Shown one piece after another: positions 31,055 through 62,619 of a DNA stretch of 64,000 bases (position 1 is its first letter; every line of letters starts with the position of its first letter). The notes under the pieces were generated by a model. That model was given only the letters and a program-made list of their open reading frames with translations, was not told the DNA's origin and made no database searches. The DNA lies in the IMG/VR virus record IMGVR_UViG_3300024502_000010, positions 140,830 to 204,829 of that record. The stretch is one strand, 5' to 3'. Both the position numbers and the translations under genes were made by a program.

Positions 31055-32257
31055 TTATTTTTGTCTAGCTCTTTGAAGGGCTCTCATAAGAGCACCAGAT
31101 CTAGTCGTTGATTTTTCAGTATTACTAGAATTTTTTTCACGATTTTCTCTACTTGGAATTACTCTCCTATTATCAGAAGAATCACCCGGATGAATTGCTT
31201 GAAATCTTGATTTTGTTGTTTCACTTCTTCTATTTGGTTGTGCTTGAATATGATCTACATCATGCTTTTGCCCTGTTTCCTGAGACTTACTTTTTGCCTC
31301 ATCTCTTTGAGACTTTTTCCTTCCCCTTTCAATTCTTAATGCTCTATTCGCATTTTTTTTACAATCACCCGGATGCAAATTTCTTTTACAATGATCTTCC
31401 AACTCTTTATGACTAATCGCTTTTAGATTTTCTTTTCTCCTTTCATCTTGGTCTTTTCTTTTTTCTTTGGATTCTAGTCCCCAATATGGAGTTTCTGCAG
31501 TTTGTCTATTTTTTAATCTATAAGCATTTGGATTTTCTTGTGATTGTCGAATTTTCTCAGCATCTTCTCTAGAACGGATTCTAGTATATTTTCTTGCTTC
31601 TAAAATAATATAACACTCATATATAAACTCACTAAAAGTTTTTCCATTAAAGGAATCACTCAACTTCGCCATCTGAACACCAGTCTTGGGATTTCTTTCT
31701 CCCATTCCTAGTTTCTTATAAATTCTACCTCTTTGTTCTGCACCTTCCTCACCACTTCTACTCTTTTTACCCTTAGACTTAGCAGAATCAATAGCAGTAG
31801 GAGTATTTGTAGCAACTCCTTTCTTTGACTTCATAGTATCTTTTACGCCTTTGAGAGCACCAACAAATTGTCTTGCTCTTTGTCCGGGATCTTTTACTTT
31901 AGATTTTGGAGAACCAACAGTGATATCATGAACTGGAGAATCTTTCTTAGCACCAGTTTTACCAAACTGTTTTTTTAATTCTTTACTCTGTGGCTTATCA
32001 CCCTCTCTATGTTGCTTTCTTGCAGTATGAGCAGCATAATCTCCAGGAGACTTATGAGTTCTTACCCAAACAGGAACATCTTTTCCACTCTTTTCTACTT
32101 TTGGATCTTGAATGGGACCTTTTTTCCTAAACCCCGCACGAGAAACATCTTTTCTCGCGGCACCTTCTGATCCACGCATATTCATAGTTCCGGAAGGTCT
32201 AACTTTTTTCCCTACCATCAAAGTCCTTTCATCAAGGATTTCTTCTTGAAACTGCAT
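31055..32257 (-). CDS. Basic putative virion-internal protein with C-terminal HNH-like domain
   Basis: Late promoter CATAAATA; internal KTFSEFIYE; HDVDHIQAQ...SSDNRRVIPSRENREKN. Confidence 0.65.
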   Translation of the reverse strand: MQFQEEILDERTLMVGKKVRPSGTMNMRGSEGAARKDVSRAGFRKKGPIQDPKVEKSGKDVPVWVRTHKSPGDYAAHTARKQHREGDKPQSKELKKQFGKTGAKKDSPVHDITVGSPKSKVKDPGQRARQFVGALKGVKDTMKSKKGVATNTPTAIDSAKSKGKKSRSGEEGAEQRGRIYKKLGMGERNPKTGVQMAKLSDSFNGKTFSEFIYECYIILEARKYTRIRSREDAEKIRQSQENPNAYRLKNRQTAETPYWGLESKEKRKDQDERRKENLKAISHKELEDHCKRNLHPGDCKKNANRALRIERGRKKSQRDEAKSKSQETGQKHDVDHIQAQPNRRSETTKSRFQAIHPGDSSDNRRVIPSRENREKNSSNTEKSTTRSGALMRALQRARQK

Positions 32258-32272
32258 CTTTATAAGTACTTT

Positions 32273-32932
32273 TTAGGTATTTATGAAAACTCTACCATAC
32301 CAAAAACCACTTGGAACTTCATCAATAGAGTTTATGTATTTGTTTTCATTTCCATTTGTAATCCACTTTTTACCATAACAAGGATTTTTCTCACCAAGTT
32401 TTGCCTCAATATGTTTTCTTTTTGTTTCTGGATTTTGATGAGATTTGAGTGCTGCCTGTCTATGGTTCTCAACTACTTCTGGACGATTGTGTGCTTTCTT
32501 TCCAACTCTACTTTTTAGTTTTCTCATTTCTGGATTACTCAAAGTTCTAATCAAGTTTTTTCTTGCTTTCTCTTTGAGTTTTGGATTACTCATAGGATTG
32601 TATTCTGTTTTCATCAACTCACTTCTTTTCTTGTTTGCTTCTTCACCAGCACCTTTATTACAATAAAATCCAGTAGAAGTTTGTTTTGCCCTATTAGCAA
32701 AGTGTGGATTTTTATCTACTTCATAAAAATCGTGGAGAGCACATTCTGCTTCAAGTGCTTCTTCAACACTCCCAAAAGTTTCTAATATTATTTTTTGAGT
32801 TGGATTGAAAGTTTTATCTTTGAAACTTCCAAAATAACTTACATCTTCTTCTGGAAGACATTTACATTCTCTTTTTCCAATATAACCTCTTCCATATTCC
32901 TCATAGGAATAATACACATAAAAGTGTTTCAT
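32273..32932 (-). mobile_element. GIY-YIG (Seg-like) homing endonuclease
   Basis: FYVYYS...GRGYIG.R, E...H, N.A; basic NUMOD-like tail. Confidence 0.85.
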
Positions 32933-33029
32933 ACTACTCTAACTTGCTGACATTACTATTTATACAAGAAAGGAGTGCCGAAGCACTCCAATCCCACCTG
33001 AAAAGTGTCAGCAAGTCAGGTAAAGTTAT

Positions 33030-33683
33030 TTAGACATCAGCAAGAACCAATCGTTTAGCATAGTCATAAGCATATTGTGTTCTTGCTCCATGGTGTCCCC
33101 ATCCAATCCATTCGTAGGCATAATTCATATACCTATCAATAGATTTTCCAGAAACTTTCATTCTGTTTTCAATACTCTTCCATTGTGGTTCAGTAGTAAT
33201 ATACCGAAGTTGAGTATCAGCAGTAGAAGGATTACCTCCTATTTTTTTAGCAAAAGCACCCAGTCCATAATAACGAGAAGCAGAAGTAAATTGTATCAAA
33301 CCATAACCTCTTCCACAATTATAGTATGAGGTTCTACTACCACCTTCACAAATGTTAGGCACGAATGTTGATTCCTGTCTAATATTGCCCATGATGGTAG
33401 CAAGGGCGTTTCTGTCTCTAATACCACGATCCTGGAAAAATGCCAGGGTAGCATTCTCATGTTCATTACACCCTTTACAAATTAGTCTTTTCTCTTTTGG
33501 CTTTGGTGGTGCAACCTCTAGGATTGCTGTCTTCTCGGGTTCAAACTCTTTAATAATAGAATAAGGTTTTTCATCCACTGGGGGAGGAGGACCTTGCAGT
33601 TTATAACTAGAGAAAGGCAGTGATGCCGTATTGGTTGTAACCATTGCTAAAAGAGGAACGGCTACAGTAAAGAAGTTTAGCAT
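33030..33683 (-). CDS. Phage lysozyme-like cell-wall hydrolase (Phage_lysozyme2-like)
   Basis: ATIMGNIRQES, GYGLIQFT, DTQLRYI; N-terminal signal-like segment. Confidence 0.75.
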   Translation of the reverse strand: MLNFFTVAVPLLAMVTTNTASLPFSSYKLQGPPPPVDEKPYSIIKEFEPEKTAILEVAPPKPKEKRLICKGCNEHENATLAFFQDRGIRDRNALATIMGNIRQESTFVPNICEGGSRTSYYNCGRGYGLIQFTSASRYYGLGAFAKKIGGNPSTADTQLRYITTEPQWKSIENRMKVSGKSIDRYMNYAYEWIGWGHHGARTQYAYDYAKRLVLADV

Positions 33684-33837
33684 TAAAATTAATTGAACTC
33701 TACATCCGTATAGAAAGGGGGTACACCCTTTTCTCAAAGGGCACTTTCCACGGCTCTAATTGTCACTCAAAGTCTCATTACAAGAAAACCCACCTTATGG
33801 TGGGTTATAAACATTATAAGTTTTTATTTAGAATCTG

Positions 33838-34032
33838 TCAAGATTCCACTTCTTCAGAAGTTTCTTTGGATTCTGGCTCTGGCAAAGTAACTCCAATTTG
33901 TGTTAGATACTCAATAGCTCCTTGAACTTTCCAAAAAAGTTCTCTGTTTTGATTAATTTCTGATTCAAGTTTAACTCTTTGTTCTAAAAGTTGTTGTAGA
34001 TGTTGCTGCTGTTCTGTCATTTTTTTTCTCAA
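33838..34032 (-). CDS. Small coiled-coil protein
   Basis: 64 aa ORF. Confidence 0.6.
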   Translation of the reverse strand: MRKKMTEQQQHLQQLLEQRVKLESEINQNRELFWKVQGAIEYLTQIGVTLPEPESKETSEEVES

Positions 34033-34050
34033 ATTTTATTAAAAGTTTAT

Positions 34051-34227
34051 TTAGTAATCTTCAGGTTCTAGAGAGACAATCTCAAGTTCATCATCTTCCG
34101 GTTCAATCCACTCATAAAACTCAGCAAGAATTGCGCGTGCATCCTCTTTAGGAATGCTCATATCAGCGGCACGGTCAAGAGACCATGACCTAACATGAGC
34201 AACAATATCTTCAGTCGTTGCGTTCAT
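34051..34227 (-). CDS. Hypothetical protein
   Basis: MNATTEDIVAHVRSW... Confidence 0.65.
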   Translation of the reverse strand: MNATTEDIVAHVRSWSLDRAADMSIPKEDARAILAEFYEWIEPEDDELEIVSLEPEDY

Positions 34228-34654
34228 AATAGTCCTTTCGGAAGTACCTGTTGAGGATGTTGCTATTGTAGTATCTGGGCACTCCACTGTCAAGGGATTC
34301 TGTGAGAACATTGTTGAAGAAGAGTTGCCTTGTTTCTTCAAAGTTTGTTTTGCCCTTTGTTTTATGTAATGATAAAATAGTGCGCGTAAAATTCTCCCTA
34401 CCATATTTCTCTATATCTTCTTTGAGTTCTGGACATGAACCATAGTATTTTTTCCAATCAGATTCTGCCTTAACCTTTCTAGATTTTCCTCTCGGTGTGC
34501 GGAAGCTCCAGAAATATTTTCGACCAATATAGTCACGATTAGTTTTGTTGCAATGAATATGATATACGAAACCAAAATAATCCTGAATATCACTCGAACC
34601 AAATTCTTTTCCATTGTAGGTCCAAGGATTCTCATAGTCAATATCTGTACTCAT
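34211..34654 (-). CDS. GIY-YIG nuclease (endonuclease II/DenA-like position)
   Basis: GFVY.I...YIGRK, YYGS, E....F; lies just downstream of nrdB. Confidence 0.65.
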   Translation of the reverse strand: MSTDIDYENPWTYNGKEFGSSDIQDYFGFVYHIHCNKTNRDYIGRKYFWSFRTPRGKSRKVKAESDWKKYYGSCPELKEDIEKYGRENFTRTILSLHKTKGKTNFEETRQLFFNNVLTESLDSGVPRYYNSNILNRYFRKDYYERND

Positions 34655-34799: not shown

Positions 34800-34837
34800 A
34801 AAAAAGGGGAAGGATAACTTCCCCTATCTATATGAGA

Positions 34838-39901: not shown

Positions 39902-40117
39902 TTACTGCGATGGTTTGTTTTTCATCCAGCGTTTGCGGGATCCCACTCCTAAAGATGCATATTTTTTTCTTCTCGTTAAACCCATAACAGGATCAAAACC
40001 AGCAGTTGGACCTTTTGGTTCAGCAGATGCACTAAACCCAGGAGCACCAGCAGAAGAACCAGTTACCATCTGCTCTCTAACTATTTGAATTATCCAGTCC
40101 AATTTCTTCTTTTCCAT
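39902..40117 (-). CDS. Hypothetical protein
   Basis: 71 aa ORF. Confidence 0.65.
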   Translation of the reverse strand: MEKKKLDWIIQIVREQMVTGSSAGAPGFSASAEPKGPTAGFDPVMGLTRRKKYASLGVGSRKRWMKNKPSQ

Positions 40118-40490
40118 TGTAGATTTTATAGAGTTCAGAGAGGCAGTTTATGTCAACTTGAATATCATGTATATAACATTTTGGATATTCGGGTAACCTA
40201 TTAAGAAAAATAATGAAGGTTTTCATGGCAGACCACAACTCTCTTTCTATTTTATAGAAAAGCATTGGAGTTGCTGCCTCCCCAAAAATATTATAAAGAA
40301 TAATAAAATGATTAAGAAGAAGGTGAGTTTTTAACTGACCAGTATTCTTATATCGTTTCAATAATCTTTTAATATATTTGAAATGATTTAAATCCTTTTC
40401 AAAATCTTCTTTGGTTACTGCTTGAGGATTTTCATAATGTTTAATAGCGAATAATATAAAATTATCCTCATTCAACTCATTAAAAATCAT
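40077..40490 (-). CDS. Conserved T4-like phage hypothetical protein
   Basis: 137 aa ORF in the primase neighbourhood. Confidence 0.75.
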   Translation of the reverse strand: MIFNELNEDNFILFAIKHYENPQAVTKEDFEKDLNHFKYIKRLLKRYKNTGQLKTHLLLNHFIILYNIFGEAATPMLFYKIERELWSAMKTFIIFLNRLPEYPKCYIHDIQVDINCLSELYKIYNGKEEIGLDNSNS

Positions 40491-40493
40491 AGA

Positions 40494-41246
40494 TTATAGA
40501 GCAGGTGGATAATTTGTATTTCCAGTAGTAATTCCAGACATTGCAACAAGAACTTCCTTCCTAACTCTCAGATTACCTTCACTATCTTTATATGTCGTAA
40601 TACCGACCCAACCACCATGAGTTAACTCATAGCGAGTTGCTGATGCCGCAGTAACAACAGTTCCATTAGCACCAATAACAGCAGTCTCACGACCACCAGT
40701 TACCCTTGAGAAAGTAACTAAGTTTCCAGCAGTAATTGCAGTTGCGATGGTTGATGCAAGAGAAACTGAAGTTGATCCAACAGATGCGACAACCTTAGAA
40801 ACAGCTCCACTGGCAAGAGTATCTCCAGCAACAACACCAGCAACACTATTAACTAAAACTATATCAGTTCCAACACCTGCAGTATAAGTTGCGGATGTCT
40901 TAAGGAAGGTATAGTTTTCAGTTACTGACCCAGTTGACTGATTTAAATGACTATCTAAAACTGCATACTTAGGCGATTCGCTAATTTCAAATGCAACTCC
41001 AGAAATAGCAGACCCATTTAATCCTGCAGTTGATGCAATAGAAAGACTCGTCGTACTTGCAATACCAACAATTACAGCATCACCGTAGTGAACACCAAAT
41101 GCAGTACCAAATCTAATCACATCTCCAGTTGCAGCAGCACCTACTTGACCAAATGTAGTTCCACTGCCAGTTACAGTAAGGGTTGCATAATCAAGAGATA
41201 CTGTACCACCAGATCCTTTAGCATCATTATTTCCCCAGAGTGCCAT
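40494..41246 (-). CDS. Virion structural protein (MALWG start, Gly/Ala/Thr-rich)
   Basis: TATAAATA upstream; beta-rich composition. Confidence 0.65.
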   Translation of the reverse strand: MALWGNNDAKGSGGTVSLDYATLTVTGSGTTFGQVGAAATGDVIRFGTAFGVHYGDAVIVGIASTTSLSIASTAGLNGSAISGVAFEISESPKYAVLDSHLNQSTGSVTENYTFLKTSATYTAGVGTDIVLVNSVAGVVAGDTLASGAVSKVVASVGSTSVSLASTIATAITAGNLVTFSRVTGGRETAVIGANGTVVTAASATRYELTHGGWVGITTYKDSEGNLRVRKEVLVAMSGITTGNTNYPPAL

Positions 41247-41300
41247 GTTCTTTCTTCCGTAAAGTTATTTGCTAAAAATTATTTATAAAAAAAAGAGACC

Positions 41301-41465
41301 TTACTTTTGGTCTCCCTTATGTAAAACAACTCTCAAAAAATTAGTTGTTAAATCAAGCAATCCATTCTCCTCAAATCTTTTTGTTTTTGCCAACCACTCG
41401 GATGTAGTTAGTAATAGACCAAGAATAATGGTTACTCCCCAGTTAGTTACAAGGCAGGTAATCAT
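41301..41465 (-). CDS. 54 aa membrane protein (holin-like?)
   Basis: MITCLVTNWGVTIILGLLLTTSEWLAKTKRF... Confidence 0.5.
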   Translation of the reverse strand: MITCLVTNWGVTIILGLLLTTSEWLAKTKRFEENGLLDLTTNFLRVVLHKGDQK

Positions 41466-41689: not shown

Positions 41690-43990
41690 TCACTTCATAT
41701 ATTTTTGCATTTCTGGATTATCTCTATAGTTAATCCTTCTATCATACTTATTTGCGACATCTGCAACATTTCCTAAAAGAGGAACTCCCTTGAGACCTTT
41801 AGCAAGTGCTGCAGATGCAGTTTGTGGTTTAGATTTAGCAGTAGCAGGTTTTGCTACTGGTTTTGCTGCAGGAGGTTTCTTATCTGGAGTTACGCCAACA
41901 GTAGTTTGACCACCACGTTCTTTACCCAAAAGTTGATTCATAGATTGTTTATTTGGTTTAATCTGTGAACCAGAACCAACTCTTTGATTATGTCTATTTA
42001 CATCGGACTGAGAAACTCCTGGTTTAAAACTTCCAGGAACTGTCTTACCAAAAACTTTCTGAACCGTTCCAGCCTGTGTAAATTTTGATCCAGAATTATA
42101 TCCTGCTTGAGTTTTTCCAGCAACAACTCTACCAGTTCCTAAGAATTCGTTAATATTTTGCTCTGCGATTTTCTTTGCCATTTTAGTAGCAGTCGCATAC
42201 ATTACTTCTTTACCGCGACCAGGATATCTCTTCTCAAAGTCTCCTGCCTTGGACTTCATTGACTTAACGATTCTTTCCTTTTCTTTAGTCTCCGCAGAGG
42301 TTAGGGTTTTTTCATCAATTATGTTTCCATCAGGTTCGTAATGAGCAACCATTGTAGAAGGCTTTTTCTTTAAACTTGCCTGAGGTAGATTTAACCCCGG
42401 TGTTGGACGAGGAACATCTCCAGGAATTCCCCCTTCCCATGCACCAGATCCACCTGTTTTTTGTGCATCTTTTCTATACCACTGCCCACCAGCAGTTCTA
42501 CCATATTTATTAGGAGCATACTCAGCTTCATCAATATGCACTTCCTCACTTCTTACACTTGCAAGAAGATCATCTAACTTAGACTTTCTTTTTGGTTTTG
42601 CTTTTGGTTTTGTCTTTTCTTTAGCATCAATTTTTGCTTTTACTTCAGCAGGTGATGGAGATCCTTTTCTTGCTTTTTTAGCTGGTCTCCCCTCTTCTTT
42701 TTTGGGAGGAGTTGTTGCACTTCCTTCCCATGGGTCAGCGGGTTTTTCTGCTTTCTTAGGTGCTGCCGTTGGTTTTGGTGCCTCTTTTTGTGCTTTTGAT
42801 TTTGAAGGTTTGCCACCTTCAATCTTACGAGCAACATTTCTTGCTCCTCTTGATACCGACCTTGCGGCTTTTGCAAGACCTCTCTTCAATTTTGAACCAA
42901 TTCTCGAAAGAAGACCTGGTTTTTTATCTTCTCCATCTGAAGTTGATTTACCACTACCAGAATCTGAAGTAGTTGAAGTTCCTGAAGTTGTAGTTGATGA
43001 TGAAGAAGATCCACTTCTACCTCTCTCATAACCTTTTCTTGCTGCAGAACCCAGTGCTCTTGCTCCTCTTACTGCAGCACCAGCTGCATATCCAAGTCCA
43101 CCAGCAATTGCTTTACCAACTTTCTTTACAGCACCTTTGACTTTTTGAAGTCTATCACTCTTAATATCAGTGTCGTGACCATAAGTAACTTTTGCCTCAT
43201 TTAAAAGTGCAGAAGAAATTTCAAGAGATTCAAGTAACTCATTTTCAATATCATTGATATCATATCCTTCTTCAATACACTCATAGAAAAATTCTTGGAC
43301 AACTTCTTCAATTAAAGAATCTGACAGTAGGAAAATTTCCATGTCTGACATTTCATCAAGAACTCCATTGAAATCTTCAATCTCATTCATTTCAAGAAGA
43401 GTTCCACCAAGTTCTTCAATTTTTTCCCCAAGATCAAGTTTTGGATTGATGTCAACTTTATTGTTAACTTCCTTTTCAACTACTCTTGGTTCTTTACCTT
43501 CACCTTTAATCTTATCTGCAACTTCAATTAAATCATCTCTCCAATTTGAAAAACTCTCTTTTCTAACGCCAATTGCTTTTCCACGAACTTTTCTACGATG
43601 CTTCAGATATTCATCAGACTTATCTACATCACCATCATTGTCAATATCCGAATCTTCTTTTCCTACAGGATCAAGTGCTTCTTTTTGGGTTGCAATTGCT
43701 TTACCAATTGCTTTACGACGCTTATGGAGGTACTTATCTGACTTATCTACATCACCATCATTGTCAATATCCGAATCTTCTTTTCCTACAGGATCAAGTG
43801 CTTCTTTTATTTTTTTCTTATCTCTCATTGCCTTTGCTTTAGCAAGAGTTCTTTCTCTTGCAGCATCCTGCTCAGACTTAGGAATAGCAGTCACTGCACC
43901 AAGTCTCTCGGCGGGTTTACCGGGAACCGCAGATTCGACAACCTGCTCCAAATAAAGTTTGGAGATATCTTTTAAATTATTGGAGTTCAT
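41690..43990 (-). CDS. Large low-complexity putative head-internal/scaffold polyprotein
   Basis: Alternating acidic and Lys-rich blocks, many (I/L/V)xE sites, late promoter. Confidence 0.7.
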   Translation of the reverse strand: MNSNNLKDISKLYLEQVVESAVPGKPAERLGAVTAIPKSEQDAARERTLAKAKAMRDKKKIKEALDPVGKEDSDIDNDGDVDKSDKYLHKRRKAIGKAIATQKEALDPVGKEDSDIDNDGDVDKSDEYLKHRRKVRGKAIGVRKESFSNWRDDLIEVADKIKGEGKEPRVVEKEVNNKVDINPKLDLGEKIEELGGTLLEMNEIEDFNGVLDEMSDMEIFLLSDSLIEEVVQEFFYECIEEGYDINDIENELLESLEISSALLNEAKVTYGHDTDIKSDRLQKVKGAVKKVGKAIAGGLGYAAGAAVRGARALGSAARKGYERGRSGSSSSSTTTSGTSTTSDSGSGKSTSDGEDKKPGLLSRIGSKLKRGLAKAARSVSRGARNVARKIEGGKPSKSKAQKEAPKPTAAPKKAEKPADPWEGSATTPPKKEEGRPAKKARKGSPSPAEVKAKIDAKEKTKPKAKPKRKSKLDDLLASVRSEEVHIDEAEYAPNKYGRTAGGQWYRKDAQKTGGSGAWEGGIPGDVPRPTPGLNLPQASLKKKPSTMVAHYEPDGNIIDEKTLTSAETKEKERIVKSMKSKAGDFEKRYPGRGKEVMYATATKMAKKIAEQNINEFLGTGRVVAGKTQAGYNSGSKFTQAGTVQKVFGKTVPGSFKPGVSQSDVNRHNQRVGSGSQIKPNKQSMNQLLGKERGGQTTVGVTPDKKPPAAKPVAKPATAKSKPQTASAALAKGLKGVPLLGNVADVANKYDRRINYRDNPEMQKYMK
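43617..43808. repeat. Two identical 69 bp copies (43617-43685, 43740-43808)
   Basis: Encode EALDPVGKEDSDIDNDGDVDKS(D) twice. Confidence 0.9.
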
Positions 43991-43991
43991 C

Positions 43992-45293
43992 TTAAAAAGT
44001 ACTTGCTTTTTTTGCTTTATACTTATTTATGAAATTGATACCATAAGCCTTGCCACCCTTCTGCAAATATTGTTTATTAGTTCCCACTGCACCGGGAGTT
44101 TTTGATGCATAATGCTTAAATGCCCCCAATGTACCAACAAGAGTATTTGGATGCTTTTCGTCTCTCATTGGACTATCCATTTGAACTTCGGTATATTCCA
44201 TCACATCTTTAATCCAAGACTTAAACATATAACCCTCTTCAGTCACACAGATTAAATGATTGGTTCCCCTACGCATTACTTCACCAATCAAACCAGTATT
44301 AAGGTTTTGAACTTTATCACCGATTCTGAAAATTTTACCTCTCACATAATTCTCACGAAGATTTCTCATATCATACTTTGGAGCAATCTCCCATAAAGCA
44401 AAACTTTCCTTTTTGATTGCTGACTTTTTAACACCCATTCCCTGACGAACAGCATTGAATAAACCTTGAGTTTCTGCATCATCAAGAGACTTTGGAGTGC
44501 CTCTTCTAAAAGATTTAAAATCGCCATCAATAACTGCCTTTCTCATCTTCGATGCCGACATTCCCTCAACACCCTCAGCATCAGCATCACGAACACCAGC
44601 AGAGATTACCCTAATTTGATCAAAGGTATAAAGTTCTCCATTATACTTTTGTGCCAGATTTTCAAACTCTGCTTGCCTATCTGAACCAACAACAATATTG
44701 ACATTAGTATACCCGTCTTCATTAGCGGTAATGAGAACATTAAAAATTGTCTTCATTTCCTTATCATTAATAATGTTCTCCTCGAACTCAGGGAACATTT
44801 TCTTCATATAAGAAACTTTACTATCAGGGTCTAAAGGATTCTTCTTTGGATCTTGAGACCTTGAAGGATAAATCTTAATATCTCCACCGGCAGAAATTCT
44901 CTTTGCTGACTTGAGAAGTTTTTCGTGCCCCACTGTTGGTGGATTGAAGCGACCAAATACAACAGTGAGTGGTGGAAGTTCTTCTGCAGGTTGCTCTTCG
45001 GGTTCTTGTCCTGGTGCTGCTTGAGGTTGTGGTGCAGGTTCTTGTGCTGTAGCGATTGGTTGAGGAGATGGTGCTTGTGCTGCTTGAGGTGCTTGTGTCT
45101 CTGGTTGTTTTGCACCTTTTGCTTGGCGACCATCAATATATTTAAGTTTCCCCTTCTCCGTTCTCGCAATGACTTTACCGGAACGGTCAATCCATCCACC
45201 ATGACCATCACCAACCAATCCAAGTTTTTTCGCTTGCATCGCTGCTTGCGATTGTGTTGCCTCAGACAAAAACTGAAAGAAATTTTTCATCAA
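43992..45293 (-). CDS. Cytidylyltransferase-superfamily nucleotidyltransferase (NadM-like)
   Basis: VVFGRFNPPTVGH, VVGSDR, SASKMR; N-terminus MKNFFQFLSE. Confidence 0.8.
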   Translation of the reverse strand: MMKNFFQFLSEATQSQAAMQAKKLGLVGDGHGGWIDRSGKVIARTEKGKLKYIDGRQAKGAKQPETQAPQAAQAPSPQPIATAQEPAPQPQAAPGQEPEEQPAEELPPLTVVFGRFNPPTVGHEKLLKSAKRISAGGDIKIYPSRSQDPKKNPLDPDSKVSYMKKMFPEFEENIINDKEMKTIFNVLITANEDGYTNVNIVVGSDRQAEFENLAQKYNGELYTFDQIRVISAGVRDADAEGVEGMSASKMRKAVIDGDFKSFRRGTPKSLDDAETQGLFNAVRQGMGVKKSAIKKESFALWEIAPKYDMRNLRENYVRGKIFRIGDKVQNLNTGLIGEVMRRGTNHLICVTEEGYMFKSWIKDVMEYTEVQMDSPMRDEKHPNTLVGTLGAFKHYASKTPGAVGTNKQYLQKGGKAYGINFINKYKAKKASTF

Positions 45294-45330
45294 TGTATTT
45301 TAACGCACTTACCTGTCTTTTAGTTATTTA

Positions 45331-46020
45331 TTACTTTGCATATTGTGCAAGTAAAAAATCAACTCCTTTATCAATATCATACTTTGATTTTGGTGGTTTA
45401 TTTGTGATTTGCAATGCGGTTGTAAATCTATAATTATAGATTGTTCCACTCCCACCTCTTTTCAACCTCAATCTAATTCTCAAACCAGGATTAAATTGAG
45501 GAACTGGAAGACCGGCAGGGTTTGCTGCCATATAATATAATCCATATCCACCAATTTGAATATAATAAGTTTGTTTAGAACCATAGTAACCCCATAAAGC
45601 ACTTGATTTAATTGGTAAAAATGCATCAGTAAATCTCGCATAGTCAGATTTTACCATATCATCAGTCATTGCTTTATTATCAATGATTCCTTTATTTGGT
45701 GGTCCTTTAGGTCCCCATTGCTTATTTGCAAAATTTTCAATGCCAACAGTTCTCATTAAATTTCTAAGTTCTTCAGCTGCGGCAGTTTTTGCTCCACCAA
45801 GAACCCATCTTCCATTCTGATATTCTAAGGTTCCTTGACCATAATCGGCTTTCAAATCAAGTTTTACTTCAAGTTTATATGGTTTTTTATTATATAAAAA
45901 CATTGCGTCTGGTGCATTAGAATCAGAACCTGCTGGAGTAAATCCCGGAGGCACTAATTTTTTAGACAACAATTTTCTATGAATTTTACCTTCGTAGATA
46001 AACCCCTGTTCGCCAGCCAT
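45331..46020 (-). CDS. Putative PD-(D/E)XK nuclease
   Basis: G..YE, PD...LEVK spacing; AATAAATA upstream. Confidence 0.5.
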   Translation of the reverse strand: MAGEQGFIYEGKIHRKLLSKKLVPPGFTPAGSDSNAPDAMFLYNKKPYKLEVKLDLKADYGQGTLEYQNGRWVLGGAKTAAAEELRNLMRTVGIENFANKQWGPKGPPNKGIIDNKAMTDDMVKSDYARFTDAFLPIKSSALWGYYGSKQTYYIQIGGYGLYYMAANPAGLPVPQFNPGLRIRLRLKRGGSGTIYNYRFTTALQITNKPPKSKYDIDKGVDFLLAQYAK

Positions 46021-46197: not shown

Positions 46198-47403
46198 TCA
46201 GTCGTGCTCACCCATTGCTTTTTGCTTACGGAGTTTCTTAGGATTCTTAGTAATTCCACCAGGACCCTCTGAAGGATAATCGTGGTCGGCACGAGTTCCT
46301 ACACCGTGAGCAGAACCTGCTCTTGCTCTTTCTCTATCATCGGCAGTTAGACCCTTTCTTGGAGAACCATAAGCATCCTTTCTGTTGGCAGGATTGGTTC
46401 TCCTTTGCATTGCTTTTAAGAATGGCTTTCTCTTTGCAGTCATCTTGGTTTTTAATGCTGCACTATATGCTTTTGGAGTTTCGCCGTATGAACCTTCTGC
46501 TTCAGAAATAATTTCAGATCTCCACTCTTCACTCATATTTGCCATAATAGCGATTGCTGCCTCTTCAGTTTCAGCATATCCTTCATCGAGCAAATATCCT
46601 TTTACAATATCGAACATATCAAATCCAGAAACAATACTTCCTGGCTTTTTGGAACCAGTTGCCTTATTTACTGGAGCAGGGGCTGCTGCTGGGGTTGGTT
46701 TTAGTGCTGCAACGGCACCACTCTTTACAATAGCATCAGCTTTTGCTTTTTGTTGATCTGGAGCATTACCAGTTTGATATCCAAATGTCTTTTGCATTAA
46801 AGGATTTGGAGTTTTTGGTTTGATTGATTCTGGACCTGCTGCCTTTGTTCCAGGAGCTGGTTTTGCTGCAGCGGTTGGTGCTGGTTTTGTTGCAGGAGCA
46901 GTTGGCGCTGGTTTTGCTGCTGCTGGTCTTGCTGCTGGGGTTGCTGCTGGTCTTGCTGCTGCTGGTCTTGCTGCTGCTGGTTTTGCTGCTGGTTTTGCTG
47001 CTGGTTTTGCTGCTGGTTTTGCTGCAGGGGGTTTTGCTGCTTGCTTTTGGAGATATTCACCAGTTGTAGAGACTCTTCTGTTTGCCTCAACACCACTCAT
47101 TCCAGTTTTCATTAATTTTTGAACTTTTGCTTTACCACCACCAGCAGAAAATGCAGTCATTACAGGTGCTTGTGGTTTTGCTGCAGGTGCAGGTTTTCCA
47201 CCCATCTGTGTTGATGTGGGAATTTCGCTCAAATATGCCTCATACATCTCTTCCCAAGTATACTCACTCAGGTCATAACCTTCTTCAATAAGAGAATTGA
47301 CCCAGTTCTCAAATTCTTGCTGCTCTTTAATCTCTTGGCGGAGTTCCTCATCATAAACTGCTTGATATGCAAGAGCTGCCTCTCTAAAAATTTTAGAATC
47401 CAT
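46198..47403 (-). CDS. Modular putative head-internal protein with AAKP/AARP repeats
   Basis: TATAAATA upstream; modules shared with 54807-55355. Confidence 0.7.
   Translation of the reverse strand: MDSKIFREAALAYQAVYDEELRQEIKEQQEFENWVNSLIEEGYDLSEYTWEEMYEAYLSEIPTSTQMGGKPAPAAKPQAPVMTAFSAGGGKAKVQKLMKTGMSGVEANRRVSTTGEYLQKQAAKPPAAKPAAKPAAKPAAKPAAARPAAARPAATPAARPAAAKPAPTAPATKPAPTAAAKPAPGTKAAGPESIKPKTPNPLMQKTFGYQTGNAPDQQKAKADAIVKSGAVAALKPTPAAAPAPVNKATGSKKPGSIVSGFDMFDIVKGYLLDEGYAETEEAAIAIMANMSEEWRSEIISEAEGSYGETPKAYSAALKTKMTAKRKPFLKAMQRRTNPANRKDAYGSPRKGLTADDRERARAGSAHGVGTRADHDYPSEGPGGITKNPKKLRKQKAMGEHD
46855..47042. repeat. 12-15 bp tandem repeats (GCTGCTGGTTTT) encoding a Pro/Ala/Lys linker
   Basis: Directly visible. 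Confidence 0.9.
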
Positions 47404-47450
47404 TTTTACAAATACTTTTTTAGTTATTTATAAAAAAAGACCCCGAAGGG

Positions 47451-47636
47451 TCAAACACCAAGAACGGCAGCAATATTATCATCCAGTTGTTGAATAACTC
47501 CACGAATATCAGAGACGCGAGGAGGAACACTTACTTCATCATAAGTATATCCTTTTTGTGCGTCAAACAAAACTTGACGAACTGCTGCTGCTGTACGAGC
47601 ATCCATTTTAATTGCTACTTGTTTTTCTTTAGTCAC
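47451..47636 (-). CDS. Hypothetical protein
   Basis: 61 aa ORF coupled to mazG. Confidence 0.7.
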   Translation of the reverse strand: MTKEKQVAIKMDARTAAAVRQVLFDAQKGYTYDEVSVPPRVSDIRGVIQQLDDNIAAVLGV

Positions 47637-53607: not shown

Positions 53608-53769
53608 TTATTCCCCACCGTCACCATCTCCATTACCACCAGCACTTGAACGACTTCTTACAGGAACTGCTTTTCCTTTTGGAACTTGCTTTTGTTTTCC
53701 TTGAGAATAAACAGTATGTGGGATTGCTCCCTTATATGCAATTGTTTTGAACTCGTCAAAAGATTTCAT
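53608..53769 (-). CDS. 53 aa basic protein with CTS-like N-terminus
   Basis: MKSFDEFKTIAYKGAIPH...; CTAAATA upstream; absent from the ORF track. Confidence 0.6.
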   Translation of the reverse strand: MKSFDEFKTIAYKGAIPHTVYSQGKQKQVPKGKAVPVRSRSSAGGNGDGDGGE

Positions 53770-53783
53770 TTTTTTATTTTTAT

Positions 53784-54218
53784 TTAGAGATAATCCTTTC
53801 GTGCATGGTGCTCAGGAACAATCTTACCAAGAACAACGGTTAGCAATCCATCCTCGAATAGAACTTCTTTAATGGTTGTATCATCTGATAATGTCCATGC
53901 TCTCTTGAAAGATCGTTGAGCCAATCCCTTATGGATGTAGTTGGTATCGGACTCCCTATCTTCCTTCTGTCCTTCGACAAAAAGTTTTCCATACTCCGTG
54001 TATACATGTACTTCCTCCTTCTTAAATCCGGCAAGTGCAAGTTCGAGTCGTGATTCTACATTACTAACTTGAACAAGGTTATATGGGGGGTAATTAGAAG
54101 TTGTTTCATGAAGATTAAATAGACGATCAAAATATTCATCCATTCCAATACTATTGCGGTTAATCCTTTCCAATAGGGCAGGAAGATCCGACGCGGTATA
54201 TCGCATGAGGTTAGTCAT
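53784..54218 (-). CDS. hsp20: Small heat shock protein
   Basis: YPPYNL, LALAGF, HKGLAQRSF.R, DGLLTV. Confidence 0.96.
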   Translation of the reverse strand: MTNLMRYTASDLPALLERINRNSIGMDEYFDRLFNLHETTSNYPPYNLVQVSNVESRLELALAGFKKEEVHVYTEYGKLFVEGQKEDRESDTNYIHKGLAQRSFKRAWTLSDDTTIKEVLFEDGLLTVVLGKIVPEHHARKDYL

Positions 54219-54302: not shown

Positions 54303-54710
54303 TTAAAGTGTGGTTTCTACTACATTATTCTTAACTGGTCTTCCAAATGTTCCAGGAGGAAACTTCATACCTTTGTTCCAAGCAGGTTTCCCCTTCATAG
54401 ACATACCGGTTTTCTGTCTTGACGCTTTATCTCTTTTTGATCCAGAAGTACCTTCACCACCATCGGTTTTATTAACCAATACACCACCACTATCTTTTTT
54501 ACCCCAAAACTTTATGAGTGCTATTTCCAAAGATAATGCTTCTTGTTCTGTTAAGTTTTCTTTTATTCTTACTATTCTATCTCTATCAGGAGGTCGTTGA
54601 GCTAATCCTAACTTTCTTTTATTTGTGTCTCTAAATCCAGAACCTTTCCCAATGTAGTAAGGAGAATATCTATCTTCACGCAAATAAGCGTAAACGTAAT
54701 ACCTTTCCAT
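54303..54710 (-). mobile_element. GIY-YIG/NUMOD3 homing endonuclease
   Basis: YYVYAY...PYYIGKG, E..LI, N.TDGGEG, KGKPAWNKG. Confidence 0.85.
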
Positions 54711-54806
54711 CTGCTTTGTTTGTGGTTATAGTTATTTATAAAAGAAAAGGAGCATTTCTGCCCCCAATCCTTTGCTTGAATAACCACAAACAAGCACTAA
54801 TATTTA

Positions 54807-55355
54807 TCAACCAATAATACTCTCTCTCCACTCTTCGCTCATATTCACCATAATTGCTTCTGCTGCTTCTGGTGTTTCAGCATATCCTTCATCAAGTAAG
54901 TGTGAGAGGATAATATCGTAAAGGTCAAAGTTTTCTCCAATCTCACCCATCGCTTGTTGCTTACGAAGTTTCTTAGGATTTTTGGTTACTGTTCCAGAAC
55001 CTTCTGTATGTTTTTTATATTTTGGATCATAAGGAGAAAGTCGTCTAGATCTTGTTGCTGCTGCTTCTCTGTTTCTGTCTCTATCCGATTGAGTCATTCC
55101 AGTTCTCATATGCCCACCAGCACCAAAAGTACCTCCCCCCTTATGTCCAAGAGATTGATGTCGTTTTATAGTTTCTGGTTCTTCTTCTCTTGATCGTGCT
55201 TTATTTTTAAGTTTCCTATACATCTCCTGTCTTTCGGGAGTTTGTCCCTTTTTTTGCCTTTCAAGTTTTGCTGCTCTATCAGCAACATCTCCTGAGGCAC
55301 CCTCAACAACTTCCATATATGCTTCTTGAAGACTACGAAATTCTTGCGCGTCCAT
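54807..55355 (-). CDS. Modular putative head-internal protein
   Basis: TATAAATA upstream; shares two modules with 46198-47403. Confidence 0.7.
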   Translation of the reverse strand: MDAQEFRSLQEAYMEVVEGASGDVADRAAKLERQKKGQTPERQEMYRKLKNKARSREEEPETIKRHQSLGHKGGGTFGAGGHMRTGMTQSDRDRNREAAATRSRRLSPYDPKYKKHTEGSGTVTKNPKKLRKQQAMGEIGENFDLYDIILSHLLDEGYAETPEAAEAIMVNMSEEWRESIIG

Positions 55356-55481
55356 TTTTAATAATACTTTTTAGGTATTTATAAAATACAAGAAACGAAA
55401 AAAAGAGGTATCGGCAAAACCGAACCTCTTTTTAGGGTGTTCCGACTTTTGTAGAGTGCCGCACGAATGGCACACTACTAT

Positions 55482-59017: not shown

Positions 59018-59019
59018 AA

Positions 59020-59439: not shown

Positions 59440-60101
59440 CCAAAAGTAGAATCGGGTTCCAAAGCAATATAATAGGTCACATCAAATCCAGTATTCTTGA
59501 ATCGTGACAAAAGTTTGGAAGAAATTACAACTTCATAAGCACCAGGAATAATCTTGATGTTTTCTACCTTAAAGTTGAATGTGAACACTTCATCAGTTTC
59601 ACCAACAACAACAGAAAAATCATTGGAGGTATCGTTCTTCTTATCACGAACAACCAGTTTCACCACACCTGCTTCGCCAACCACAGACAAGTCAGGAAGT
59701 TGATACACAGCAGCAGCTTTAAGGAGTTTATCAAGTTCCTTGGTATCAAGAATGAAACAAACATCTTCGGAAGGAAGAGAAATAGATTTATCGGGAGGAG
59801 TAACGATTACATTAGGGTCTGCAAAGAAATACTTAGAACGAGACCGACCTTCCTTAATAACTACATAACCATCATTCTGGAAATCAAGTTCAGCATTCTG
59901 ATGAAGATTGAGACCATTCAGAAATTGATTGAGATCGTAGATACCAAAATCTTTGGGAAGTTCTTCTTCGATTGTTGCTTCCGCGAGAATATTCTTCATT
60001 ACAGAAATAGTACGAAGATTATTTCCTTCTTTAAACAGAATAGACTGGTTAATAGAAGAGAAGTTCTTGAGGAGCGTGAGAGTTTTATCAGAGAGTTTCA
60101 T
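59436..60101 (-). CDS. 45: Sliding clamp
   Basis: MKLS...LKNFSSINQSI, FGIYDL.QFL. Confidence 0.95.
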   Translation of the reverse strand: MKLSDKTLTLLKNFSSINQSILFKEGNNLRTISVMKNILAEATIEEELPKDFGIYDLNQFLNGLNLHQNAELDFQNDGYVVIKEGRSRSKYFFADPNVIVTPPDKSISLPSEDVCFILDTKELDKLLKAAAVYQLPDLSVVGEAGVVKLVVRDKKNDTSNDFSVVVGETDEVFTFNFKVENIKIIPGAYEVVISSKLLSRFKNTGFDVTYYIALEPDSTFG

Positions 60102-60106
60102 AATAA

Positions 60107-60514
60107 TCAGCGAAATTCAGAGAGACCGTTATCTTTACGAGTGTAGTGTCCATCAAAGTGGAGCAGAAGCATAGCATAGTGAATCACTTTAAGCAAATCA
60201 CGCTTATTGCGTCCATCCTTGTCACCGTAGCGACTACCATACTTAATGATGTTTGCTTGACAGAACCCAGCAGCAAGTTCTTTTGCTGCCATTAGGTCAA
60301 TTGTCTGAACATCTTTGTAATCTTGTTCATGACCACAGTAGTGACTACCATAAGTGCTGGTTACATAGTCTTGAATATCTTTCAGAATTTTATCTTCATT
60401 GTATTTCCAAAGATGATTAGTAGGTTCGTTCATATTCAAATGCTTTTTTGTGAGTTCAATAATATCTTCACCATCTCTATAAAGAGTGAAGTTGTTGTAA
60501 GGATACTTGTCCAT
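60107..60514 (-). CDS. DUF3310-like protein
   Basis: HY, N.IKY.SRYG.K.G...DL.K..HY. Confidence 0.65.
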   Translation of the reverse strand: MDKYPYNNFTLYRDGEDIIELTKKHLNMNEPTNHLWKYNEDKILKDIQDYVTSTYGSHYCGHEQDYKDVQTIDLMAAKELAAGFCQANIIKYGSRYGDKDGRNKRDLLKVIHYAMLLLHFDGHYTRKDNGLSEFR

Positions 60515-60555
60515 AATTAAGAAAAGGGAAGGCACAATTACCTTCCCCAATTATA

Positions 60556-61686
60556 TCAAACAGACTGGTATGTGTCAATGGACTCTTCAACAGGCATCTG
60601 GAAGTCAGCATCCACTTTGTCATAAAGTTCAAGGAATGCTTGCTTGGTTTCATCATCAAAGCGGTTCACACACACTTGGATTGCCTTTGCCTTGTCTTGG
60701 AAGATGCTGTAAGCACGGATGATGTGAACCAGACGGCGGGTGCTGATGATTTCCTCAATACCACCATCGTAGAAGGTCTTGCGGATGATATCTGCCCAGT
60801 CAACCAGGCGCTTGCAGAAATCACGGTCTTCCACGCCAAGGTCCAGAGCGATGCCTTCCAGAATCTTCTGCTCAGTAGCAGGAGCAGGGTAGGACTGCTC
60901 AAAGGTCACAGGGAAACGCTCTAGGAACGCTTCGTTGAGCACATTGGTGCCAATGAAACGTCCGTCATCAGAACCCTTACCCTTAGTATTAGCGGTGGCA
61001 ATCACATTAAAACCAGCGGCAGGTTTTACCCAGCGACCAATCTTTTTCAGGAAAACACCTTTACCTTCGAGAATAGATTGCAAACAAAGAATCTTGTTAG
61101 AAGCAAGGTCAATCTCATCCAACAGAAGAATAGCACCACGCTCAAGTGCTTCAATCACGGGACCGTTGTGCCAAGCAGTATTCCCATCAACAAGACGGAA
61201 ACCCCCAATAAGATCGTCTTCATCAGTCTCAATAGTGATATTGACGCGAATCAGTTCACGCTTAAGTTGAGCACACGCTTGCTCAACAGAGAACGTTTTA
61301 CCGTTACCCGAAAGACCCGTAATAAACGTAGGATAAAAGAGACGGGACTGAATAATTTTTTTAACATCAGCAAAGTTACCAAACTTGACGAAGGTATCAT
61401 CTTTATCGGGAATAAGGTTTTGTTCCACAGCAGGAATCGCAGCAGGTGCTTGGAAAGTGCGTTCAATTTCTTTTACTTTTTGTTGCGTAACTTCAAGATT
61501 CCATTTACCACGACCCACTTTAAATTGGTCAAGTTTTTTTGTAACAGTTTGATAGTTAGCATCGTTCAGATTACACCAAGCACGAATATCAGCACCAGTG
61601 ATAGTGCTACCATACAGGTTTTGAAGAGAAGTGCGGATGTAGTCAGAGGAGAGTGCCATTTGTTTGCTTTGTTTCAACATAGTCAT
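60556..61686 (-). CDS. MoxR/CobS-like AAA+ ATPase
   Basis: GLSGNGKT, LLDEID, ATANT, LERF, STRRL. Confidence 0.92.
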   Translation of the reverse strand: MTMLKQSKQMALSSDYIRTSLQNLYGSTITGADIRAWCNLNDANYQTVTKKLDQFKVGRGKWNLEVTQQKVKEIERTFQAPAAIPAVEQNLIPDKDDTFVKFGNFADVKKIIQSRLFYPTFITGLSGNGKTFSVEQACAQLKRELIRVNITIETDEDDLIGGFRLVDGNTAWHNGPVIEALERGAILLLDEIDLASNKILCLQSILEGKGVFLKKIGRWVKPAAGFNVIATANTKGKGSDDGRFIGTNVLNEAFLERFPVTFEQSYPAPATEQKILEGIALDLGVEDRDFCKRLVDWADIIRKTFYDGGIEEIISTRRLVHIIRAYSIFQDKAKAIQVCVNRFDDETKQAFLELYDKVDADFQMPVEESIDTYQSV

Positions 61687-61740
61687 TATAGACCAAAAAG
61701 GGGTCCTCTTGGGACCCCAGTGGTCAGTTCTCCAATTGGT
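61685..61740 (-). promoter_or_regulatory. Cyanophage early-type promoter with internal hairpin
   Basis: CCAATTGGAGAACTGACCAC-GGGGTCC hairpin-TATAAT. Confidence 0.4.
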
Positions 61741-61909
61741 TCTTGAGTTCTTTGAGATACTCTTCGCTGGCAATATGTCCAGTATATCCTGGATAGTATT
61801 TATTAACTAAAGAAGGAATACCAATAGCAGTTGTGCTGCTATTGCATTTAATCCATACTTCTTTAGTATCATATTTTACTACATGTTCAAATGGAAATTT
61901 AGTTTTCAT
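61724..61909 (-). CDS. Hypothetical protein
   Basis: 61 aa ORF. Confidence 0.65.
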   Translation of the reverse strand: MKTKFPFEHVVKYDTKEVWIKCNSSTTAIGIPSLVNKYYPGYTGHIASEEYLKELKNQLEN

Positions 61910-62619
61910 TTTTTATTTCGTTCTTCTTGTTTACGCTTTGCAAATTGCATATAAGTTTCACCTGGTTTTAGGCGATTACTATAATCTTGTTTTGTTTGTG
62001 CAGATGTATTTTGACCTCTGTTTTCTCGAGCTCTCATCTTGTTGCCAGCGCCACTAATAGCAGCATCTTTTTTGGGATCTGGATGCCACCAGTCACCCGC
62101 CTCACTCATATTCTGTTCATAAGTAAATGTCTTGTTTTTAACTTTAGTATCAAACTCACCAGTTCTACCTGGATTCATTTTACCGACTTTAACACGCTTA
62201 CCCTCTCCTGGCCAAGACTTATTAGTTCCCACCAGTTGAGCAGAACCCTTTGGTTTTTTTTGAATTAAGACAGAATCTTGATTATATTTTTTACCAAGTT
62301 TAGTGATTGCTTTTTTGAACTTTTTCTTACCCATTTTACCAGAAGAAACTACATGTGATTTCTCACCTACTTTTTTTTCTTGAGGAGTTCCTGGGTTTTC
62401 AGTATATCTACCAGATACCTTAGTAGGTCCTGGAAGACCAGCACCTCTAATATCTTTCTCCAATTGTTTTGAACGCGCTTTATTTTCTTTCTTTGATTTA
62501 TCGCCTCTTTGGGCAGACATAATTGCCATACCACCTTTTTCTGATTTTGAGCGAACTCTATTCAAAGATGTTTCTTGAATAGAGTAACACTCTACCACAA
62601 ATTCTTGGAATGTTTTCAT
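61906..62619 (-). CDS. Basic protein with T4-type capsid targeting sequence
   Basis: N-terminus MKTFQEFVVE versus T4 IP CTS MKTYQEFIAE. Confidence 0.7.
   Translation of the reverse strand: MKTFQEFVVECYSIQETSLNRVRSKSEKGGMAIMSAQRGDKSKKENKARSKQLEKDIRGAGLPGPTKVSGRYTENPGTPQEKKVGEKSHVVSSGKMGKKKFKKAITKLGKKYNQDSVLIQKKPKGSAQLVGTNKSWPGEGKRVKVGKMNPGRTGEFDTKVKNKTFTYEQNMSEAGDWWHPDPKKDAAISGAGNKMRARENRGQNTSAQTKQDYSNRLKPGETYMQFAKRKQEERNKK

Follow-up and report, generated by a model that had tools for sequence, protein, structure and literature searches.

The internal head proteins of bacteriophage T4 carry an experimentally defined N-terminal capsid-targeting sequence (CTS), MKTYQEFIAE, in which mapping assigned residues 4 and 7 to targeting and residues 8 and 10 to processing. 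We here analysed a stretch of 64,000 nucleotides of the IMG/VR virus record IMGVR_UViG_3300024502_000010, hereafter the window, which holds dispersed late genes with leaders of this type, and we consider it quite probable that their products are cargo for the head of a T4-like cyanophage, addressed by CTS-type leaders. T4 IPI, IPII, IPIII and Alt display the same ten-residue pattern (aromatic residues at positions 4 and 7, a hydrophobic residue at 8, Glu at 10) and further resemble the present set in joining an acidic leader to a basic protein, in being late genes of a T4-type phage and in forming a variable, patchy gene set. IPI* inhibits a restriction enzyme, and one cargo described here, a predicted S-adenosylmethionine (SAM) lyase, is also of anti-restriction type. 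In contrast to T4, no similarity to the T4 proteins is detectable in the mature parts, enzymes of 230–430 residues and mosaics of up to 766 residues occur, a second leader type is present, the motif is also found internally or C-terminally in fusions, and the genes are dispersed among replication genes instead of forming one internal-protein locus, with cleavage and injection predicted from sequence.

Three further systems offer comparison. The ejection proteins of phiKZ and SPN3US are likewise numerous head-internal proteins, which lose their propeptides after Glu through a T4-gp21-like protease and are delivered into the cell, but the cleavage context is different, no common ten-residue targeting leader is present and the phages belong to another group. 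In phage P1, head-packaged Dar proteins shield incoming DNA from restriction, although they are incorporated via a Dar/Hdf hierarchy, not by a short leader and protease, and are unrelated in sequence. Encapsulin cargo-loading peptides are short docking peptides, at either terminus or in fusions, which direct cargo into an HK97-fold shell; as they bind the shell protein directly and stay uncleaved, the likeness is one of analogy only. For cyanophages, virion proteomes report 'non-structural' enzymes (cytidylyltransferase or NMNAT-like proteins, SAM hydrolase, kinases), leaving open their contaminant status and route of entry.

The viral contig has a length of 204,829 bp and an estimated CheckV completeness of 78%, and the window forms its final 64 kb. 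Numbers with the prefix w are window coordinates, while g and C1 numbers are coordinates of the whole record. Nearly all window genes lie on the minus strand, and DNA polymerase, UvsX, primase-helicase, clamp and clamp loader, RegA, primase and ribonucleotide reductase identify a T4-like cyanomyovirus, whose closest isolated phages share ~75–80% identity in the polymerase region. Leader-bearing late genes are scattered among these replication genes, in agreement with the insertion between core genes proposed in an earlier, sequence-only reading of this DNA. The payloads comprise two predicted enzymes, a SAM lyase and the core nucleotidyltransferase, together with a basic peptide of 53 residues and four large mosaic proteins, also basic, listed here with their type-A (T4-like) or type-B leaders; a slash marks the predicted cut.

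61906 to 62619, minus strand: cargo gene 1 (w61906), 237 aa; type-A leader MKTFQEFVVE at nt 62590-62619; predicted SAM lyase domain at residues ~21-170, nt 62110-62559

43992 to 45290, minus strand: cargo gene 2 (w43992), 432 aa; type-A leader MKNFFQFLSE/AT at nt 45261-45290; Pro/Ala/Gln-rich linker; predicted nucleotidyltransferase domain

53608 to 53769, minus strand: small cargo-like gene (w53608), 53 aa, beginning MKSFDEFK, with F4 and F7 but no Glu10; basic, with a Gly/Asp tail

31055 to 32257, minus strand: basic protein of 400 aa (w31055), in which an internal KTFSEFIYE/CY (residues 206-214, nt 31616-31642) joins two basic halves

54807 to 55355, minus strand: type-B protein of 182 aa (w54807); leader MDAQEFRSLQEAYMEVVE/G at nt 55302-55355; basic middle; TKNPKKLRKQQAMGE; acidic helix ...LLDEGYAE...SEEWRESI

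46198 to 47403, minus strand: type-B protein of 401 aa (w46198); leader MDSKIFREAALAYQAVYDEE; two EEGY acidic helix modules; Pro/Ala/Lys repeats; ...IISE/AEGSYGETPKA; C-terminal TKNPKKLRKQKAMGE

41690 to 43990, minus strand: type-B protein of 766 aa (w41690); leader MNSNNLKDISKLYLEQVVE/SAVPGKPAERLGAVTAIPKSE; two 41-aa repeats; acidic helix region; long basic low-complexity tail

The N-termini quoted in the sequence-only reading are all present at their positions on the minus strand, and its assignment of T4-CTS-like leaders was borne out by a ranking of the first ten residues of each of the 303 open reading frames (ORFs) of the whole record against MKTYQEFIAE by BLOSUM62, in which three window proteins and two from outside the window occupy the top five places. 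The highest scores were obtained for w61906 (42), g57669-58277 (MKTFQEFMSI, 33) and w43992 (26), followed by w53608 (MKSFDEFKTI, 19) and g58753-59001 (MLTFREFYEI, 18), with every other ORF at 17 or below. A loose pattern, [KRLQ].[FY]..[FY] from position 2, was observed 8 times against 0.52 expected (p = 7.5e-8, 303 ORFs); three of these eight matches are unrelated, namely a GIY-YIG-like ORF, a glycosyltransferase-like N-terminus and one small ORF. The sequences MKHFYVYYSYEEY (GIY-YIG-like ORF), MKIFDSFRFFNELE (glycosyltransferase-like N-terminus) and MKVYSLYHNE were set aside as false positives, as was an internal KKTFKEFVAKGE in the clamp loader.

Conservation within the leader follows the division of labour mapped in T4. 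Across 120 homologues of the w43992 transferase, M1, K2, F4, F7, E10 and A11 hardly vary, the common variants have L or I at position 8, and positions 5 and 6 are free, a pattern which agrees with T4 genetics at both the targeting and the processing positions. Aromatic residues occupy positions 4 and 7 in w61906, w43992, w53608 and the two proteins outside the window, and more loosely in the type-B leaders of w54807, w46198 and w41690. The hydrophobic residue 8 and Glu 10 are found in w61906 (V8, E10), w43992 (L8, E10) and the internal motif of w31055 (I, E), while w53608 has K8 and I10 in place of these processing determinants. A Paraglaciecola myovirus carries MKTFSEFLGE on a SAM lyase homologue and MKTFSTFMAE on a neighbouring gene (gp46 and gp48), and therefore the signal is not limited to cyanophages. 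A second cluster of leader-bearing late genes, comprising MKTFQEFMSICEE (202 aa), MLTFREFYEICEA (82 aa) and a w54807 paralogue, MDAQDIRNLQEAYMEVVE (214 aa), was additionally observed at C1:57669-59647, in a hypervariable region 83 kb upstream of the window start.

Homologues with the same leaders have been found in purified cyanophage virions, which is the virion presence expected from the head packaging suggested in the sequence-only reading. For S-CREM2, 52 proteins were detected by mass spectrometry (MS) in CsCl-purified virions, and when the 214 ORFs of its whole genome were ranked by the same a priori T4 CTS score, four of the five top-scoring ORFs fell among these 52 (Fisher p = 0.012): the cytidylyltransferase gp154 (MKNFSSFLTE), gp136 (MQTFSMFFSE), the SAM hydrolase gp6 (MKDFDSFLEE) and gp13 (MKDLHSFLTE). 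The w61906 homologue gp6 was represented by 19 peptides in virions; the virion kinase gp14 starts with VKRFDAFLTE and the virion protein gp15 with MNFSEFNE. The virion-detected 'Cas9-like nuclease' gp12 (L002 7704-10313, minus strand), located in the run of leader-bearing virion genes gp13 to gp15, has a leader-like PLRFASFMAE/A near residue 17.

In S-SCSM1, the block syntenic with 39.9–47.4 kb of the window is annotated almost entirely as virion protein (genes 89, 91, 92, 95 and 97), and both leader types are included. Its transferase, MKSFLQFLKE, is virion-annotated and 60% identical to w43992; S-SCSM1_92 (MTHLNDISKVYMEKV), also virion-annotated, is a homologue of w41690 with 37% identity over ~300 aligned columns; and S-SCSM1_89 (MDSKTFNSLSEAYAAVY...), a virion-annotated type-B protein, is the one to be compared with w46198. 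The transferase homologue was detected in virions of S-CREM2, S-SZBM1, S-SCSM1 and S-SM1. Because counterparts in related phages were found inside purified virions, the leader-bearing proteins of the window were most likely loaded into the head as well.

Detection in virions could also reflect sticky, abundant late proteins or a location in tail or baseplate, with the similarity to the CTS being coincidental. Some detections comprise 1–3 peptides, whole-virion MS provides no location, carry-over was raised by the S-SCSM1 authors themselves, and the cyanophage virion studies gave no entry mechanism and left carry-over open. We nevertheless regard this explanation as very improbable, since the transferase turned up in four phages that had been purified independently, the SAM lyase homologue was detected with 19 peptides, detection correlates with the leader, and leader enrichment is far above chance.

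Among the cargo, w61906 is the best characterised by its predicted function. It matches Pfam PF23780 (E = 3.9e-18, 66.1 bits, cut-off 28), and a profile built from 61 homologues matches the T3 SAM lyase with E = 1e-4. As AlphaFold2 without an alignment gave a poor model (predicted local distance difference test, pLDDT, 52), an alignment-based model was used instead, with a pLDDT of 85.8 and ten-residue blocks averaging at least 93 over residues 21–170. The model displays the alpha-beta sandwich known from phage SAM lyases, and its seven best PDB matches in Foldseek are all T3 SAM lyase or Svi3-3, headed by T3 SAM lyase 8bb1_E (E = 2.5e-6, template-modelling (TM) score 0.71 by target). Gly56, Tyr58, Glu69 and Gln104 are strictly conserved SAM-binding residues of Svi3-3; G70, Y72, E86 and Q114 of w61906 align with them and show little or no variation among the 61 aligned sequences. 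Pfam match, modelled fold and active-site residues together identify w61906 as a predicted SAM lyase, an enzyme of anti-restriction type and in line with the head-packaged effectors inferred in the sequence-only reading, which had pointed to IPI as an injected restriction inhibitor.

Fold and the four SAM-binding residues are thus common to w61906, T3 SAM lyase (gp0.3) and Svi3-3 (PDB 8bb1, 7ock, 6zm9), while w61906 carries an additional basic C-terminal module, starting ...NMSE/AGDWWHPDP. Enzymes of this family are trimers whose active sites lie between the subunits, and they split SAM into MTA and homoserine lactone. T3 expresses its SAM lyase as the first early gene after DNA entry, whereas w61906 has a late promoter, a capsid-targeting leader and a homologue in virions, and the enzyme would therefore be pre-made and delivered. 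Within the SAM lyase family (1111 matches), the strict motif starts 35 of 150 diverse representatives and near variants start many more, while further members begin at the domain. The leader is modular, as it is also found in front of unrelated modules, for instance in MKTFQEFIIE/AGDYWDPDP, where the junction is the same as that of NMSE/AGDWWHPDP within w61906. SAM lyase is present in ~14 phage records, and most of the 264 tblastn matches touch the C-terminal module only.

The second predicted enzyme, w43992, belongs to the cyanophage-core 'cytidylyltransferase / NMNAT-like' family (phrog_395, E = 1e-102) and contains GRFNPPTVGHEKL, a motif of the (H/T)xGH form seen in HxGH nucleotidyltransferases. 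The Pfam match to CTP_transf_like is weak (17.5 bits, cut-off 21), the NCBIfam NMNAT and cytidyltransferase models lie far under their cut-offs, and no sequence relative was found in the PDB. Its start is assigned to the ATG at 45290, while the ORF lister begins at a TTG (45293). The family comprises more than 8000 homologue clusters with the N-terminal consensus MKSFxxF[LI][TS]EA.

The 53-codon w53608 is missing from the ORF track, as the sequence-only reading had already remarked, and proved to be a real gene, intact in 79 of 80 related IMG/VR viral contigs, where it occurs in 47 different sequences and its Gly/Asp tail varies in length without loss of frame. Among isolated phage records it gave no tblastn match.

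The leaders of w41690, w46198 and w54807, previously described as related acidic leaders, turned out to be a distinct, conserved second type, with the consensus M(D/N)xQ(D/E)(F/L)RxLQEAY(M/L)EV(V/Y) among 120 w54807 homologues and a terminal VVE; a relationship with type A was retained in so far as both types can be exchanged on one protein body. In the protein P0283, a body 66% identical to w54807 follows the type-A leader MKTFQEFMLIVE, and BLAST pairs RSLQEAYMEVVE with KTFQEFMLIVES in register between P0283 and w54807. Because of this swap and the type-B virion detection in S-SCSM1, we infer that types A and B are functionally equivalent. For w54807, 3528 homologues were found, in which leader and C-terminal module are conserved while the middle is variable. 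The first 20 residues of the six larger proteins have an isoelectric point of ~4–6, compared to 9.3–10.3 for the remainder; w41690, w46198 and w31055 are strongly basic overall, w54807 only beyond its leader.

The large proteins share mosaic modules, including the acidic helix ...L(L/I)(D/E)EGY(D/A)..., TKNPKKLRKQKAMGE, AEGSYGxTPKA, GAVTAIPKSE and GDWWHPDP, whose fusions differ in other phages; a further EEGY-module protein is located at C1:130584-131318. Module junctions display a hydrophobic-x-E followed by A or G, as in NMSE/AGDWWHPDP (w61906), MKTFQEFIIE/AGDYWDPDP (P0146) and IISE/AEGSYG (w46198). The 707-aa S-SZBM1_194 consists of several of these modules strung together, with an internal GFITYREFIAE/GN, nearly T4's own CTS, directly before its SAM-lyase-like part. 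Some long homologues carry the motif internally, like w31055, and in the DSL-LC02 homologue of the w31055 N-terminal half it is C-terminal (...GRITFNEFMSMIYE, followed by the stop codon). With internal and C-terminal copies in fused proteins, the signal is therefore not strictly N-terminal. A frameshifted SAM lyase was considered for the C-terminal half of w31055 and rejected, since only the first 27 residues past the motif resemble w61906; the family hidden Markov model finds a single SAM lyase in the record. Residues ~64–145 of w41690 (43600-43780, minus strand) hold two tandem 41-residue repeats with DSDIDNDGDVDKSD, a lookalike of a calcium-binding (thrombospondin type 3-like) loop, and this repeat is the part of w41690 most widely conserved among cyanophages.

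No known domain was found in w41690, w46198, w54807 and w31055, and the absence of an enzymatic domain raises the question whether above all the large type-B mosaic proteins are scaffolding-core components, comparable to T4 gp22, gp67 and gp68, rather than injected effectors, with leaders and internal motifs serving as protease sites for clearing the core. The alternation of acidic helix with basic low-complexity modules, the many hydrophobic-x-E sites and the position of S-SZBM1_194 within a structural gene block, adjoining the small terminase gene, are in agreement with such a role. Scaffold is, however, largely degraded and expelled, whereas homologues of these proteins persist in mature virions; the proteins are fast-evolving, mosaic and patchy, unlike essential scaffold proteins, and two leader-bearing proteins are, by prediction, enzymes. 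We therefore judge a purely scaffolding function unlikely, though clearly less remote than carry-over. Both roles are compatible, given that T4 internal proteins also belong to the core, and for the large mosaic proteins a place in the core or scaffold is as conceivable as an effector role.

For head cargo, the targeting step itself is well supported. Several observations nevertheless weigh against this interpretation. The portal, prohead protease, scaffold and capsid genes were not found in the record by tblastn with S-CREM2 proteins, and terminase and sheath genes are likewise missing; a PF03420 protease search of the record gave zero matches and was uninformative, as controls also gave zero. 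Since the contig lacks protease and scaffold genes, both have to be assumed from relatives, which encode them (S-CREM2 gp143 and gp144). The contig ends within the gene just upstream of w61906 (window 62616-64000), beyond which the head module would come next in relatives, and we attribute the missing head-module genes to this truncation. The high-scoring S-CREM2 gp83 was undetected in virions, S-SZBM1_194 is absent from the 30 proteins identified in the S-SZBM1 virion, the S-SCSM1 authors allow for carry-over of abundant late proteins, and whole-virion MS does not separate head from tail. One strict internal motif match resides in the clamp-loader gene, which is non-late, Glu10 is absent from w53608, type-B leaders match the T4 CTS loosely only, and leader cleavage after Glu is for these proteins a prediction.

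Late transcription is suggested by the promoter sequences. TAAATA is located 10–40 nt upstream of 9 of the 10 candidates compared to 42 of 293 other ORFs (Fisher p = 5e-7), which supports the earlier assignment of late promoters to these genes, and the tenth candidate begins 2 nt past its late-promoted neighbour. The coding strand contains 54 copies of ATAAATA, the opposite strand 6. From the extended motif that had been described at three sites, two copies are exact (TAAATACCTAAAAAGTA, 17 nt, expected 0.12 times), while the third contains a one-base insertion. The promoters are located as follows.

62646 to 62660, minus strand: late-type promoter and leader CTAAATAAAAAAGTA of w61906, inside the 3' end of the upstream gene

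45315 to 45333, minus strand: late promoter TAATAAATAACTAAAAGAC of w43992

32267 to 32283, minus strand: extended late promoter and leader TAAATACCTAAAAAGTA of w31055, exact, inside the 3' end of the GIY-YIG-like ORF 32273-32932

55365 to 55381, minus strand: extended late promoter and leader TAAATACCTAAAAAGTA of w54807, exact match

47413 to 47432, minus strand: late promoter and leader TATAAATAACTAAAAAAGTA of w46198, with the one-base insertion, preceded by a terminator-like hairpin

44014 to 44031, minus strand: late promoter CATAAATAAGTATAAAGC of w41690, inside the 3' end of the transferase gene

within 53767 to 53788, minus strand: CTAAATAA promoter of w53608, conserved upstream in relatives

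Putative terminators, G+C-rich hairpins followed by a T run, immediately precede several late promoters (47432-47460, 54733-54760, 32957-32990 and 41287-41310, minus strand), so that each cargo gene has the appearance of an insulated unit, with its own terminator and promoter, in the midst of early and middle genes. Two GIY-YIG-like ORFs, 32273-32932 and 54303-54710 (both minus strand; FYVYYSYEEYGRGYIGK with a weak NUMOD3 match, and YVYAYLREDRYSPYYIGKGSG), each with its own TATAAATA promoter, adjoin w31055 and w54807, the two cargo genes with identical 17-nt promoter/leader. This arrangement hints that homing endonucleases help to move these cassettes.

The same arrangement would also be compatible with a shared N-terminus that is a by-product of a promoter-leader-start cassette, spread by recombination or homing and possibly aiding late translation with no role in targeting. 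The 17-nt promoter/leader is identical at two genes flanked by GIY-YIG-like ORFs and nearly so at others, and the first codons, ATG AAA, are A-rich. Yet conservation of the peptide at the protein level extends to widely diverged families and to phages infecting other hosts (gp46 and gp48 of the Paraglaciecola virus), positions 4, 7, 8 and 10 are fixed while 5 and 6 are free, as in the functional pattern of T4, internal and C-terminal copies of the motif involve no promoter, and the genes with the exact 17-nt cassette, w31055 and w54807, are without a type-A N-terminal peptide. We therefore attach hardly any probability to such an origin of the leaders.

Returning to head cargo as the preferred interpretation, we propose a model in which the enzymes (SAM lyase and nucleotidyltransferase) and the basic proteins most likely enter the head during assembly and probably reach the cell together with the DNA. 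Each gene would represent its own late transcription unit, often with a terminator hairpin, a TAAATA promoter and an A-rich leader, giving a product with a short, acidic, amphipathic N-terminal peptide on a strongly basic protein. The type-A leader, M-K-x-F-x-x-F-hydrophobic-x-E, would constitute the cyanophage version of the T4 CTS and dock the protein on the scaffolding core during prohead assembly, and the type-B leader, M-D/N-x-Q-D/E-F-R-x-L-Q-E-A-Y-x-E-V-V/Y, would do the same job. Cleavage by the prohead protease after Glu (hydrophobic-x-E, followed by A, G, S or C) would free the basic mature part within the shell, where it would be retained with the DNA. The same docking and cleavage motif joins the modules of longer fusions, which would probably be cut apart in the head. 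Scaffold binding, cleavage, ejection with the DNA and early action, in the form of SAM depletion against restriction or BREX-type defence, are thus conceived as successive steps of this model. The mobility ascribed to the set in the sequence-only reading holds for the SAM lyase, which is sporadic (~14 phage records), but not for the transferase gene, which is cyanophage-core and syntenic.

Several neighbouring late ORFs do not carry a leader. The rest of the syntenic late 'virion-protein island' comprises the following features.

39902 to 41246, minus strand: ORFs 40494-41246 (250 aa) and 39902-40117 (71 aa), neither with a leader

Their homologues, S-SCSM1_95 and S-SCSM1_97, are virion-annotated, while the S-SCSM1 counterpart of the ORF between them, 40077-40490, is non-virion. 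The 71-aa ORF 39902-40117 (minus strand) shows similarity to the N-terminal part of the major capsid protein of S-CREM2 as well as to the virion proteins S-CREM2 gp160 and S-SCSM1_97, with the likeness running through an AGxxGF(S/T)xxAxPxGPxAGxDPxMG motif, and may mimic the N-terminal arm of the capsid protein. Between w46198 and the transferase gene, the 229-aa ORF 45331-46020 (minus strand), likewise without a leader, has its own late-type promoter and a PD...E-x-K-like motif, and its ESM-Atlas model resembles R.HinP1I-type and PD-(D/E)XK nucleases (TM score 0.59 by query). It could be a late or packaged nuclease, which we mention as a lead only.

The T4 CTS and internal-protein system is classical; what appears new from the sequences described here are enzymatic cargo, a second leader type, and internal and C-terminal placements in fusions. 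The sequence-only reading had called such effectors largely uncharacterised in cyanophages, which applies to the targeting signal but not to the virion association of the transferase and of the SAM lyase homologue, which is already published. In the searchable literature we did not come across a publication that connects the enzymes in cyanophage virions with a CTS; 'capsid targeting sequence' together with cyanophage retrieved only a T4 review dealing with cyanophages in passing, and a review of T4 relatives contained no mention of the CTS. A T4-type CTS leader would provide a simple mechanism, readable from the gene, for the presence of enzymes in virions. Used as a predictor, it could allow packaged cargo to be read from any T4-like marine phage genome or metagenome, with the transferase family alone exceeding 8000 clusters, and it would offer a natural packaging tag for cyanophage engineering. 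The case of w61906 furthermore suggests that SAM depletion is deliverable as a pre-made enzyme instead of an early gene.

As a wider and more tentative proposal, which we hold to be possible though somewhat doubtful, marine T4-like phages, both cyanophages and their heterotroph relatives, may use a position-independent docking-plus-cleavage peptide as a general cargo code, by which any protein or module train would gain entry to the prohead, be cut apart by the prohead protease and be delivered along with the DNA. If this were true, the leader would mark a large, fast-evolving, pre-made arsenal of SAM lyase, NMNAT-like transferase, kinase, nucleases and basic DNA-binding proteins, acting ahead of any phage gene expression in some of the ocean's most abundant viruses.

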